Assembly: GCF_052425735.1 (NCBI RefSeq)
Contig: NC_135763.1
Coordinates: 25,482,001 to 25,546,000 of the forward strand
Length of the DNA: 64,000 nucleotides
Source of the DNA: Oculina patagonica
Lineage: Eukaryota
Direction of reading: 5' to 3'
Of the stretch, positions 34,373-39,820 are shown one piece after another. Under the pieces are notes generated by a model, which worked only from the letters and a program-made list of their open reading frames with translations, was not told the DNA's origin and made no database searches. A program made the position numbers and the translations under genes. Positions within the stretch are counted from its first letter, which is position 1. Each line of letters begins with the position of its first letter.

Positions 34373-37300
34373 ATAAGAATAACTTATGATTATGAGTCAA
34401 TTAATAACTGCACAGATATCAATTGTGTTTGAAGATAAATTGATTTACGTGTATTTTGAGGATGTTTCTTTGAGAGAATTTCAAATGTTGTGTTGCCTAA
34501 TTAATTAATTCCTCTTTGCCTTTTATCATATTGCTTTGTTATGACAACGTTATTGCAATTAGGTGTATATTCAAGTGAATCTTTAAGTATACGCAATAAA
34601 GGCGAATTCAGACTGTACAAGGAGTTGCATTCTACACTTATAACTGGCGAAAATAAACTGATAGTAACCGAAAATGTTGTGACCTAGTCCTATAGGACCC
34701 TATAGGTGGTTTAGTCTTTCACCTCGGAAGAACCCCTTACTCTTACTTCAGCCTATATGTACATATAAAATCTTTTTGAAAGCTAGCATGCAACACTGTA
34801 ATCGACTTTTAATCTGACGAGACTGTTGATCCTGACTCCAGTCGGCTCGCTTTCTTTTCCTTTTTCCATTTTTTCTCAATGACCTGGCCCTAGTTGTGGT
34901 ATGTACGTAAAATTTTACGATCTGCCAGTTATAATCAAATAAACCTACGTCATTTACGACACACTGAAAATCCAAACGCTTGTTTTAAATAACTAAGTAC
35001 ATTCATCTTGACCTCGGCAATAAATAAACTAGTAATAAATACTTGTCGCAGGTCTGAAAAAAATTAGAAACGTAGCTTTCGGCCGTATCGCGCGGTCTTC
35101 ATTAGCGAAGTCAACAAATATAAATATTTTAATTTGCTTGATTTTCAATTCAAAAAAGGTTGAATATTGTTGAATATTACTCAAGTTATTAATGTTGATA
35201 ATATTGATAAAAAGCTGTTAAAAGGTGTACTGAACGGTTTCGATCTATAAAATCACCATCAAGCCGTCAAGTCTGCAAATGAAAACGAGTCAAGTAACAT
35301 TGAAAATGGTTAACAAAAACCAATTCCCATAGGACACAATATGAGTTGGCATACTGCGACTTGTTTTAAAGTTCGGAAAGTCCAGCAATATGATGAAATG
35401 ATTGTGCACTTTGGCCAAACTTGGTACAGTGATGATGTTCGATGAGCTGACCAATTTCAGATATAAGCCCATCCATCCATCTATCAAATTATCATTTTGG
35501 TAGTCATGGTCGCATTAACAGGTGGCAAAAATTCATAATGATCTCAAAAGCTGTGTTAACAGAACAGAATGTTAATCAATTTGTATTTCTACGTTTTCAT
35601 GATTTGTGCGTTCGGTTCTCAGCGTTCGCGTTGTTGGCTACCAACGACAGGAGAGTTCCGGCGACGTCGGAGGTCGATGAATCTACGCCAGCTTTACAAC
35701 AAGCAATCAGAACGCACAGGTCAGGACTCGTAGTGGCCAGTAGCGAATCAAGGTATCTCTGTCATCAGATAAATATCGGTGGGTAATTAAGTCAGAGTTC
35801 TTTTCATGATTACAAATATCAATGTTCTCAAGTAACCGAGTATTTTAACACTATATGTATTTAGCAGTAAGACATATTTATATTTATTACATATAATGAT
35901 CACGAACAGTGGGAGAATTAGGATTACCTCAAAACGCTTTATAGAACGGCATGGTCCCACCGGAAAATTCTCGCACAAAAGACTATACCTCGGCCACTTT
36001 AATGGGTGGAACCAGTTGGTGGTGGAAATTGACCGTTCCATTTTAAAAACGGTTCTTGCTTCAGATTAACGACTTATTTGCTAGTTTTATCTTAAATGTG
36101 TATTTGTAGATCTAAAACAAGTCAGTGCTGATAATTTATTTACACGTCGACGTTTTAATTTGAAAACGTGAAGTAGGTTTCTAGGCTGCGAAAGTATCTC
36201 AAAAGTATTTTAATAGTTTTCAACTAATTAAATTATTTTATCATAATACTAAAAATGACATTTTGCTTCTTTTTCAATCTGTTATCAGTTTGGTCATACA
36301 GAGTATTTAGAATTGTAAGGAGCTGATAAAATGAGTGCGCGACCACGGATAAAAGCTTACCAATACGTACGTGACGAACCCATTCAATTCCAACTCAGTG
36401 CAGAATTCTCCGGCGATAAAGGGAGACCAAGCTCAAGGGCCGTACTGGCAGAATAACGGCCTTAGTTCGTAAATAGAGGATAATACATTGCTGCGCGGAG
36501 ATATGAAATTTATCTTCGAGTGTTCAAATCGATAGCTCACGAGTGAGCGCTGCGAACGAGTGAGATATCGGTTTTGAACACGAGAAGATAAATTTCATAT
36601 ATCCAAGCAACCATGTATTATTCTGTTTATTACATGTCTGATACCATTTTTATCAATTTGCTACCAGTCGCTATACTATACCACTGCAGTTTATATAATA
36701 AAAAACTATTCTAGTAGTACGGCAGCACCCAAAGTAATCACTCTGGCCAATTAATCACAAAGGACACAGACAATCCAGTGAACCAATCAAAATTTGGAGT
36801 AAATACATCAGTAGCCGGCGCGGAGCGTGGAAAAACGTGTGCATGCGAGAGAGTTACGATTTTGTTTTGGTTTTACTTTTGGTTGGATGTAAAACTGTCG
36901 TGAGATTTTTAAACCAATCACTAAGCGTACTAATGCAAAACCAAAGCAAACGCGCATAACTTTTGTCACTCAAGTGAATATCGCTCTAAGGGAAAAGTTA
37001 AGACTTATAATTAATGATTCAAAACACTGGATCGACAATAAAGTATTCTGGTTAGCTGAGTTTAATTATAGGACTTCTCAGATGTCTGGAAAACGGACAA
37101 AGCGTGTACGATATCGTCTTTCCTTGATAAAAGGAAAGCTTTTCACATATTACATGTATACCAAGTAATCAATTGCTAAGCTAACCACCTTTTGGCATCT
37201 TGAAAACGATGGTTTTTCATACAACTAGCTGAAAAACTAAGCTGACTACCAGACACCTTTCGTCTTATTGATCTTACGATAATAAAGATTTTTAGATTCT

Positions 37301-37634
37301 AGTTCAAGAAAGTGCCCGAGGCGACTTTTCTTCGCTGATATTTTCAACGCCTTTTTGACTTTACCTCGCCCCCAATAACTGCCACTGGTTGTGACATTTT
37401 TGTGACTGTCTTTCAGTTTTTTTTTTGCGCTGAAATAGCAAAGCACGCGAGGTTTAAAAAAATATAATACAAATGATTATACCCACACGAGGCTCAGACA
37501 ACATCAGCTTGATCGGAGAGAAATAGAGGCAATATGACGAATTTTTCGTTTCAAACAAGGGTTTTAGGAACACCGGCTGTTTTGGAAAGTGTTTTAGGTA
37601 AACCGTCCGCCAATCCGGCTTGTTTGTCTGAGTC

Positions 37635-37721
37635 TATTCTCGACCCCAGAGCTCTTCTCTTTTGCGCATGACTGACGCCGTCAGTCACGTGCAAAAGACA
37701 AGAGCTCTGGGGTCGAGAATG
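37635..37721. mobile_element. Tiny palindromic MITE upstream of the GT10 gene
   Basis: attctcgaccccagagctctt...aagagctctggggtcgagaatg hairpin; imperfect 9-bp TSD gtctgagtc/gactgagtc. Confidence 0.7.
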
Positions 37722-38325
37722 GACTGAGTCTTGTCTGAGTCATGACATCACTTGCACACTTCGCTATTAGTCATACATTCTCGTCGTTTTTTTTTTGTTT
37801 GGCTTGGCTGGTGTATTTTTGCATATTTTCTGTGCAAGTTAGTTTTTTGGTGTCGCGTTATGTAATTGCTTTTTGTTATTTTCGTAACTTTATTAGCCCT
37901 ATTGTTGTCTTAAAAATCCGTATAAAAATTCGTACGTTTGGTTTTCACTGATATACGATTAGTTTTTGTATTCCGGAATAGCCGTAAGGATCTTGTAGGT
38001 ATTTATGTTATCTTCGTATTTTTCGCTGATTTCTTGTTCGATTGTTGTACATTTAGTTTGGTTTAGTTTTTTAAGGTCGTTGGTTTATTCTGTGTTTCCC
38101 TTATGTTTGTTTGTGTGTTCAAGTGAATCGCAAAGTAATGTATCGGCGAATTCACAACTGTACAAGGAGTGTTTTCTACAATGAGTATTGGTGACTCTTA
38201 GAAATTTATAAAAAAAGGTTCAATAAACTGTATACAGAGATTTTTCACTCCGACTTCGCAATGTGATGTGACTTATACGAACTATTGTTTAACAGGTACA
38301 ACAGAAGACTCCCGAGACGATAGCG

Positions 38326-39489
38326 ATGGCAGTAGATTTGTTTGTGTTAAAATATCTACCAGGCGTGTTATTCCTGGTAGTGCTATTATGGCAACTTGAG
38401 GTGAACTACGTTTCAGATAAAAATAGTTTATTTACGAAACCTGCCATAAAGAAGGTACAAACAGCACAGAGAGCAAATGCTGACCATAACAAACATTTAG
38501 GGAACCACGCAACAAAGACTTGGCTTATTGTTTACTGGTCAACGTTTTTTGGAAGACGACTAGATCTACATGAAAAATGGACAAATGGCAAATGCCCAGT
38601 ACCATGCGAGATAACCAGTGATATATCCCGAGCAAAAGAGGCTGATGGCTTCGTTGTCCATGCTAGGGATCCAAGTCCGTTTCCTCCTGAAGATTCTAAG
38701 CCATGGATTCTGCAAATACAGGAAAATCCCGTTTATACACCAATATTGAAAGATGCTGCGTTCATGTCCAAATTCAGCTTATTAAAAAGCTATCGCTTGG
38801 ATTCGGACTTCCCTAATCCTTCAGTTATGTTGCCTAAGTTAACACCACCGATCCCCTTTAAGCATGAAACTGGGCTCATAATGGTAGCGCTGTCAAATTG
38901 TGAGAGGGTGCGGACGGAATATATGAGGCAGTTGATGAAATTTGTACAGGTCGATTCTTACGGAGCCTGTCTTAGGAACAAAAGAGGTCTAGTTCAAAGG
39001 TATGGTAAAGATAAAGGCAAAGATTTCAGGCAAGTCAAATCTGAACTTGCCAGACAATACAAATTTACATTGGTGTTTTTTAACCAAGACTGTGATTATT
39101 TTGTTGATGCTCAACTACACCATGCATGGAATGCTGGCTCAGTTCCGGTAGTCATGGCAACAGACAAACTTGATGAGTTCCTGCCTGGACCATATCTTAA
39201 TCATTCAGTCATAAACGTCCGGGATTTTTCAACTCCACAGCATCTCGCCGAATACCTGAAATATCTTAGTAATAATGAAAATGAGTACAATAAATATCTA
39301 GAATGGAAGTGGAAAGGATTTGGGAATATAACTGGAACTGTTATTGGAGATTATTGGAAGCCAAAGTATCCACTGTGGTGCCAGGTCTGTGTGGCACTTT
39401 CAGAGGGGCGGGTGCACAATAATGGTCTTAAACCAATAACATGTAATCCAAGGCGTTTTGAAGACTGGGGAATAACAAAAGGGGCCTAG
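38326..39489 (+). CDS. GT10-family (alpha-1,3-fucosyltransferase-like) glycosyltransferase, single coding exon, 387 aa, atypical donor motif
   Basis: Type II N-terminal TM; CPVPCEIT, QENP, SYRLDSDFP, SNC...R..YM, VDSYGAC, YKFTLVFFNQDCDYFVDAQL, GSVPVV, LAEYLKYL...EYNKYLEWK. Confidence 0.9.
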   Translation: MAVDLFVLKYLPGVLFLVVLLWQLEVNYVSDKNSLFTKPAIKKVQTAQRANADHNKHLGNHATKTWLIVYWSTFFGRRLDLHEKWTNGKCPVPCEITSDISRAKEADGFVVHARDPSPFPPEDSKPWILQIQENPVYTPILKDAAFMSKFSLLKSYRLDSDFPNPSVMLPKLTPPIPFKHETGLIMVALSNCERVRTEYMRQLMKFVQVDSYGACLRNKRGLVQRYGKDKGKDFRQVKSELARQYKFTLVFFNQDCDYFVDAQLHHAWNAGSVPVVMATDKLDEFLPGPYLNHSVINVRDFSTPQHLAEYLKYLSNNENEYNKYLEWKWKGFGNITGTVIGDYWKPKYPLWCQVCVALSEGRVHNNGLKPITCNPRRFEDWGITKGA

Positions 39490-39820
39490 CGAGCTTTTAA
39501 GCTTTAGAAGTATGGAAAGGAAAACTTGCAGGACCTTACCAAACTAAGGAAGCGAGCTGGGAACAAGTGCTAGTTTTCGTAAATCCTTACACTGTAGGAA
39601 ACCATACAACGAAAAATAAAACCCAATATTTCTAATTCTTGTTCCTGCTCTCTTTTTGTAGAGATGTTCGTACCAGTAAAGTAAAGTAAAGTAAAACTTT
39701 ATTTACACAGGGTGGCCCATTCAGTTCTAAGGCTGGTCTCCATAGAGGCCCTGTATCTTAAAAAATGCAGATGTCATTTAAATGCATGGCTAGTACAACG
39801 GCAAAAGGACACTTTTAATG

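Follow-up and report, generated by a model that had tools for sequence, protein, structure and literature searches.

A conserved coral branch of the GT10 glycosyltransferases with a rewritten donor motif

The stretch of Oculina patagonica DNA analysed here, 64 kb in length and referred to as the window, carries on its forward strand a complete gene of the GT10 glycosyltransferase family, whose coding sequence is preceded by a non-coding exon and an intron. The following features were located:

35664 to 35782, forward strand: upstream non-coding exon (5' UTR), from spliced contigs, its 3' end set at the GT donor at 35783
35783 to 38295, forward strand: intron of about 2.5 kb with GT..AG ends, an interval skipped by the contigs and containing repeats
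38326 to 39489, forward strand: complete single-exon coding sequence of the GT10 family, stop codon included, 387 amino acids, reading frame intact
38356 to 38424, forward strand: N-terminal hydrophobic helix, residues ~11-33, a type II signal anchor (helix 11-33 in the AlphaFold2 model)
38722 to 38724, forward strand: Glu133 of QENP, equivalent of the catalytic base by HMMER alignment to FUT9 Glu137, AtFUT11 Glu158 and HpFucT Glu95
38893 to 38913, forward strand: phosphate/guanine loop S190-N-C-E193-R-V-R196, with Ser190 and Arg196 kept and Glu193 as a family-specific invariant
39058 to 39117, forward strand: rewritten donor motif YKFTLVFFNQDCDYFVDAQL, residues 245-264, from HMMER alignment and conservation
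39379 to 39390, forward strand: C-terminal C352-x-x-C355 motif, from the family alignment
39442 to 39468, forward strand: family-invariant Cys373, Arg376 and Trp381, downstream of the CxxC motif, from the family alignment

The 387 codons run uninterrupted from 38326 to 39489, and the predicted protein exceeds the curated Pfam cut-offs for both domains of the family, namely the C-terminal domain PF00852 (E 4.3e-29; 101.9 bits, cut-off 23.9) and the N-terminal domain PF17039 (E 1.9e-10; 41.6 bits, cut-off 28.7). An AlphaFold2 model built from an 88-sequence alignment (pLDDT 91.7, pTM 0.82) displays a GT-B domain, the fold expected of GT10, which Foldseek superposes on solved enzymes of the family: the top matches are human FUT9 (E 2e-17), AtFUT11 (7e-15), mango FT13 and Helicobacter pylori FucT (HpFucT), all with a probability of 1.00. 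HMMER returned the same four enzymes (AtFUT11 being Arabidopsis FUT11/FucTA) as the best solved relatives, and among reviewed AlphaFold models the top Foldseek matches were POFUT3/4 and Drosophila FucTB (E ~1e-21), with FUT3-9 returned as well. The signal anchor is followed by a disordered stem (residues 34-60, with pLDDT <50 at residues 36-53), and this layout of anchor and stem is common to all paralogues of the genome.

Contigs from two sequencing runs (X1, record 1, and X2, record 22) link positions 35664-35776 to 38295-38849 and bypass about 2.5 kb, and splice sites are present in the genome at both ends of the gap, with a GGTAAT donor at 35782/35783 and the acceptor ttgtttaacAG, whose AG lies at 38294-38295. 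Such a pattern would be expected of a spliced mRNA whose first exon is non-coding, from runs that are guessed to be RNA; a search for sequencing runs on record as RNA found none. Contigs of X11, a DNA-like run, read straight through the acceptor. Over the coding part, 51 of 555 positions of the spliced contig disagree with the window, so that its source may be an allele, a sister species or a very close paralogue. The intron holds high-copy repeats at ~36470-37060 and 37455-37848, where the summed contig depth reaches ~1.9e5 in run X11; these zones show numerous alternative joints as well as loose ends and resemble dispersed repeats or transposon fragments. Downstream of the gene, a short (AGTAA)n microsatellite lies at 39676-39700, some 190 bp past the stop codon, and depth is raised across 39622-39818 in all runs.

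Roles were assigned to residues by sequence alignment to AtFUT11, FUT9 and HpFucT. HMMER aligns the donor motif without gaps to those of FUT9 (CKFYLSFENSIHKDYITEKL) and AtFUT11, and the four substitutions named in the original prediction, E252F, Y259F, E262A and K263Q, are all recovered in this ungapped alignment, as are the elements which it regarded as kept, that is, the glutamate of QENP (Glu133), the arginine of SNC..R (Arg196) and the asparagine (Asn253); Ser190 is present too, and the reading frame is intact. Further changes, additional to those first reported, are S/T254Q, D258Y, T261D, a histidine at 266 and Glu193 in the phosphate loop. In the AlphaFold2 model, residues 245-251 form a strand and 252-262 a loop, and a helix begins with 263-270.

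The literature agrees with the statement, also made in the original prediction, that residues of this motif bind GDP-fucose in H. pylori FucT (PMC11468063, PMC4202792, PMC12717137, PMC12929593). Donor contacts in that enzyme include Tyr246, Glu249 and Lys250 (PMC11468063), and mutants of Glu249, the equivalent of Glu262 here, are virtually inactive (PMC4202792). The pattern E-N-X5-Y-X-T-E-K has been called invariant for this fucosyltransferase branch in a review (PMC12717137), and 100% of the pocket is common to all human GT10 enzymes (PMC11949838); the window protein reads F-N-X5-F-X-D-A-Q, of which only the asparagine and an aromatic residue conform. The loop that precedes the motif is in place, with Ser190, Asn191 and Arg196 present at the positions of AtFUT11 Ser218, Asn219 and Arg226, which bind guanosine and pyrophosphate (PMC12929593). 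Equivalences derived from the ungapped HMMER alignments and the published AtFUT11 contacts (PMC12929593) are listed below, each with the AtFUT11 residue, its role and the residue of the window protein:

AtFUT11 Glu158, catalytic base: Glu133
AtFUT11 Ser218 and Asn219, guanine and phosphate contacts: Ser190 and Asn191
AtFUT11 Arg226, pyrophosphate: Arg196
AtFUT11 Arg248, guanosine: Arg217
AtFUT11 Glu270, fucose hydroxyls: Phe252
AtFUT11 Asn271, pyrophosphate: Asn253
AtFUT11 Thr272, fucose: Gln254
AtFUT11 Glu280, guanosine: Ala262
AtFUT11 Lys281, diphosphate: Gln263

By this alignment, the radical changes cluster at the predicted contacts to the sugar hydroxyls (Glu252), the ribose (Glu262) and the beta-phosphate (Lys263), and the new carboxylates and histidine are predicted to render the site more acidic.

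Human FUT9 (PDB 8D0O/8D0W), an alpha-1,3-fucosyltransferase and the best match in both sequence and fold among solved structures (HMMER E 4e-17), shares with the window protein the GT-B fold, the type II topology, the YRxDSD segment and the residues aligned with Glu133, Arg196 and Asn253 (Glu137, Arg202 and Asn246, respectively); however, identity is ~24%, FUT9 possesses the full E-N-X5-Y-X-T-E-K motif, and it lacks the C-terminal CxxC extension found here. AtFUT11/FucTA (PDB 9S6A), a core alpha-1,3-fucosyltransferase (HMMER E 7.5e-17), resembles the window protein in the SNC..R loop, in CxRN and in the C-terminal CxxC, but its Glu270, Thr272, Glu280 and Lys281 are replaced by Phe252, Gln254, Ala262 and Gln263. 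H. pylori FucT (PDB 2NZW/2NZY) has the GT10 fold in common, while its Tyr246, Glu249 and Lys250 are all substituted. POFUT3/POFUT4 (FUT10/FUT11) and Drosophila FucTB share the C-terminal extension with CxxC, whereas the FUT10/11 types carry a canonical FENA.C.DYMTEK motif.

The rewritten motif is not confined to this gene. The form FFNQDC[DE]YFVD[DA]Q occurs in >150 homologues from soft corals and from both major clades of stony corals, and among the 120 top-ranking homologues, which share 57-80% identity with the protein, 118 carry FFNQDC[DE]YFVD[DA]QL or a one-residue variant. Sources include Desmophyllum, Oculina, Pocillopora, Montipora and Acropora among the stony corals, robust and complex, and Xenia and Dendronephthya among the octocorals. 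Since the motif is found in stony corals and octocorals alike, it is older than the split between hard and soft corals, and this version has been fixed since before that event. Relatives of the family are also encoded on eukaryotic contigs outside the named anthozoans; for two of them, P0139 and P0132, the search for encoding contigs gave only short metagenome scaffolds. One member comes from an Entosiphon transcriptome, where contamination is possible.

An exhaustive search of cluster representatives yielded a series of motif forms:

FENS.C.DY[IV]TEK: canonical GT10
FPN[AS]DC.[YF]YMTEK: Paramuricea and others
F[FM]N.DCDYFVDEK: Xenia and others
FMNQDCDYFVDDR (..VDDR type): includes L015, a paralogue from the same genome
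FFNQDCDYFVD[DA]Q: the group of the window gene
FMNADCDLWVDTR: some members fused to STELLO, Stealth or LicD domains

All forms without the glutamate of FEN group together in a single clade, separate from canonical GT10 with an SH-aLRT of 92; in a tree rooted on canonical GT10, the clade comprised 78 rows and its SH-aLRT was 99. The intermediate forms would fit a stepwise change under continuous function; the forms that retain TEK are not claimed to be ancestral because the backbone inside the clade lacks resolution. Rows of the FUT10/11 type (P0221 and P0332) sit among canonical GT10, outside the clade (SH-aLRT 99). Members of the family bear automatic names such as 'FUT11-like' and 'POFUT4-like', which are misleading: given that the FUT10/11 types fall outside the clade, these public names do not denote orthology. 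Orthology to POFUT3/POFUT4 (FUT10/FUT11) was accordingly rejected, on the placement of these types in the tree and their canonical motif. A literature search found no description of the rewritten-motif clade, which does not prove the absence of such a paper, and the clade is apparently an undescribed, conserved variant branch of GT10.

Several smaller groups were observed in these analyses. The sub-branch with FMNADCDLWVDTR (P0137, P0141, P0153, P0170 and P0318) is found in long multi-domain proteins with a STELLO-type glycosyltransferase, Stealth CR2 or LicD; one such member comes from a TARA small-size-fraction scaffold, and the sub-branch possibly represents protist proteins. P0142, P0150 and P0155 form another sub-branch, which reads FM[RK].DC.D[FY]IDEQ and in which Glu133 and Asn253 are gone but Arg196 and Ser190 persist. 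Outside the clade, the otherwise canonical P0166 and P0209 have alanine for the FEN glutamate and aspartate at the position of Thr261 (..DYVDEK), a combination that hints that the loss of Glu252 and the gain of Asp261 may be coupled. P0133 has a predicted N-terminal DUF5641 domain, which is retroelement-associated and probably reflects a gene-model fusion.

The genome of O. patagonica, a robust-clade coral, contains 15 members with the rewritten motif, 14 of them full-length open frames with a signal anchor of their own; L014 is shortened to an open frame of 284 amino acids that corresponds to the last ~270 residues only. The loci L002-L014 lie in small tandem or inverted clusters on several chromosomes (C3:29.48-29.60 Mb, C10:14.63-14.71 Mb and C2:5.23-5.35 Mb), and the translations of L008 and L009 are identical to NCBI proteins of this species. 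The genome match of L009 holds one TAA; a 376-aa open reading frame from the locus is identical to the annotated Oculina protein. In addition, the same genome has >20 canonical GT10 genes with FEN...TEK.

Among 42 non-redundant members of the family, Glu133, Glu193, Arg196, Asn253, Asp255, Cys256, Asp261, Thr279, Cys373, Arg376 and Trp381 are present in every one; a basic residue at position 217 is enriched (36/42). Within canonical GT10, Arg196 is found in 63/63 sequences and Glu133 in 60/63. Glu252 and Glu262, invariant in the 63 canonical sequences, are lost from the family together with Lys263, and the conserved residues that it has gained are Glu193, Asp255, Asp257, Asp261 and His266. At five positions where the 63 canonical sequences show no variation, the family has F, M, Q, H or T for Glu at position 252; F or W for Tyr at 259; D, A, T, S, N or V for Glu at 262, with Asp in most members; Q or R for Lys at 263; and G, S or A for Gly at 278. 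The alanine that the window protein has at 262 is a recurrent sub-variant, for which the tree indicates at least three origins inside the clade. The 23-residue stretch that starts at residue 245 has the lowest entropy of the protein (0.54 bits vs 1.28 for the whole domain), and the stretch at the motif is likewise the most conserved one in canonical GT10. Pairwise dN/dS (NG86) among 14 paralogues of the genome ranged from 0.10 to 0.33 (median 0.20), and that of the canonical GT10 paralogues of the same genome from 0.18 to 0.43 (median 0.29). The paralogues with the rewritten motif are, therefore, constrained no less than canonical GT10 genes of the same genome.

These data bear directly on whether the gene could be a decaying or recently inactivated copy with a one-off motif. 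Nothing other than the loss of canonical residues speaks for this, and it is contradicted by the intact frame, the spliced contig, the conservation of the motif across Anthozoa and the low dN/dS; on the last two grounds we rejected decay, whose probability is negligible. The original prediction had favoured a change over decay, a view that would have failed had the motif been unique to one gene evolving at a dN/dS near 1. The findings go the other way, with a widespread motif, dN/dS ratios of 0.10-0.33 and an FNQDCDYFVD motif that falls in a conserved clade of the GT10 phylogeny (SH-aLRT 92/99).

As to the function of the protein, we consider that the chances are about even that it is a functional, expressed member of an ancient, Anthozoa-wide GT10 subfamily acting as an inverting transferase with a changed donor or binding mode. 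In such a scheme, a type II membrane protein with a lumenal GT-B domain of catalytic type would retain the general base Glu133, the pyrophosphate-binding Arg196, Asn253, Ser190 and an aromatic residue at 259, and the sub-site that in all characterised GT10 enzymes accommodates the hydroxyls of fucose together with the ribose and the beta-phosphate would have been rebuilt into a more acidic, strictly conserved surface. The rebuilding would involve Glu252 to Phe/Met, Thr261 to Asp, Glu262 to Asp/Ala and Lys263 to Gln/Arg, with Glu193, Asp255, Asp257 and His266 as new residues. The functional groups may have been re-registered, E-N-S becoming F-N-Q and T-E-K becoming D-D-Q, with the basic residue at 217 or 376, or a cation, taking the place of the lysine; a divalent cation bound in place of the lost Lys is one possibility. 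Judged from the sequence, the protein is most likely still an inverting glycosyltransferase that depends on a nucleotide sugar, with a donor, or a manner of holding it, unlike that of every GT10 enzyme studied, and the 15 paralogues would differ mainly in their acceptors. The former donor pocket has stayed the core of the protein's function and gained new invariant residues, which argues for the binding of a ligand; the retained general base, arginine, asparagine and serine speak for a phosphorylated donor as this ligand and for continued transfer. Weighing against a changed-donor enzyme, Glu252 and Glu262 are invariant in canonical GT10, mutation of the H. pylori counterpart of Glu262 all but abolishes activity (PMC4202792), the predicted beta-phosphate ligand Lys263 is lost, and position 262 is relaxed in the family.

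A much less probable reading keeps GDP-fucose as the donor, the protein being an ordinary alpha-1,3-fucosyltransferase with near-normal kinetics in which Gln254, Asp261, Arg/Lys217 and Arg376 stand in for the lost residues. The functional groups do seem to have moved by 1-2 positions rather than to have been deleted, Y259F and K263R each occur singly in otherwise canonical sequences (e.g., P0163), and the basic residue at 217 is frequent in the family. On the other hand, no characterised GT10 enzyme lacks Glu252 or Glu262, the motif being invariant (PMC12717137) and the human pocket fully shared (PMC11949838), and this genome is already supplied with >20 canonical GT10 genes.

The serious rival to a transferase with a changed donor or binding mode is a lectin-like, non-catalytic protein derived from GT10, i.e., a pseudoenzyme serving as lectin, chaperone or regulator that would have preserved its fold and acceptor-side cleft in order to bind glycans or partner enzymes, and whose donor pocket would have been re-used for a ligand other than a nucleotide sugar; we regard it as somewhat less probable than not, though well within reach. 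Cosmc is a glycosyltransferase-derived pseudoenzyme in which the fold of the transferase was kept and the donor-binding residues were lost. The loss of three canonical donor-site invariants (Glu252, Glu262 and Lys263) and the near-complete inactivity of the H. pylori Glu249 mutant (PMC4202792) are in line with such a fate, and an acidic pocket formed by Glu193, Asp255, Asp257 and Asp261 would disfavour a diphosphate unless a metal is bound. Moreover, the lineage can go that way, as the related P0142, P0150 and P0155 have lost the catalytic glutamate and Asn253; since these three have kept Arg196 and Ser190, retention of the latter two is by itself no proof of donor binding. Judging by their residues, these three make stronger candidates for pseudoenzymes than the window gene does. 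In contrast to proteins of the Cosmc type, the window family has many copies, an invariant catalytic base and phosphate arginine, and a donor motif that is its most conserved part: Glu133, Arg196 and Asn253 are 100% conserved across the 42 members, and constraint is tightest, not relaxed, over the rewritten motif. The expansion to 15 copies with divergent stems is typical of enzyme families, and in one sub-branch the protein is joined to further transferase domains.

In all GT10 enzymes characterised, bacterial to human, GDP-fucose is used by means of one invariant motif; the coral branch has kept the base and rewritten the motif. A more specific form of the changed-donor reading, which we put forward tentatively and as the less probable outcome, is that the branch represents the first GT10 lineage without canonical use of GDP-fucose, made up of Anthozoa-wide Golgi transferases that employ a new donor sugar or metal-assisted binding to build an as yet unassigned glycan linkage of the glycocalyx or mucus of corals and soft corals. 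Within that reading, Glu193, Asp255-x-Asp257, Asp261 and His266 may form the metal-assisted site. If the proteins are active, they would perform a new glycosylation reaction in reef builders, animals in which symbiosis and colonisation by microbes are shaped by the mucus and the glycans of the surface; should they be inactive, they would constitute a large, selected family of binding proteins derived from glycosyltransferases.

One donor had been singled out in the original prediction, namely arabinose, and this part of it found no support and is very improbable. The proposal, of a GDP-D-arabinopyranose (pentose) transferase that makes the arabinose of coral mucus, draws on the fact that D-arabinopyranose (D-Arap) is fucose without the 6-methyl group and on the abundance of arabinose in the mucus of some corals, where it reaches ~46 mol% in Montipora (PMC11189453). 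Nevertheless, mucus arabinose is characteristic of complex-clade corals and absent in the robust clade (PMC11189453), and the family, with the same motif, is present and expanded in robust corals such as O. patagonica and the azooxanthellate Desmophyllum, and is found in Pocillopora and octocorals as well. The changes strike contacts to the hydroxyls, ribose and phosphate, and a switch to arabinose would demand none of these changes: the hydroxyl pattern of D-arabinopyranose equals that of L-fucose, and so there is no call for losing the hydroxyl-binding glutamate or the nucleotide contacts. Enzymes that use GDP-fucose also tend to accept GDP-D-Arap unchanged (bioRxiv 10.1101/2021.05.10.443387). 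Finally, the known D-Arap transferases, SCA1/2 of Leishmania, belong to CAZy family GT79 and not to GT10, and the window protein is assigned by Pfam to GT10, outside GT79.
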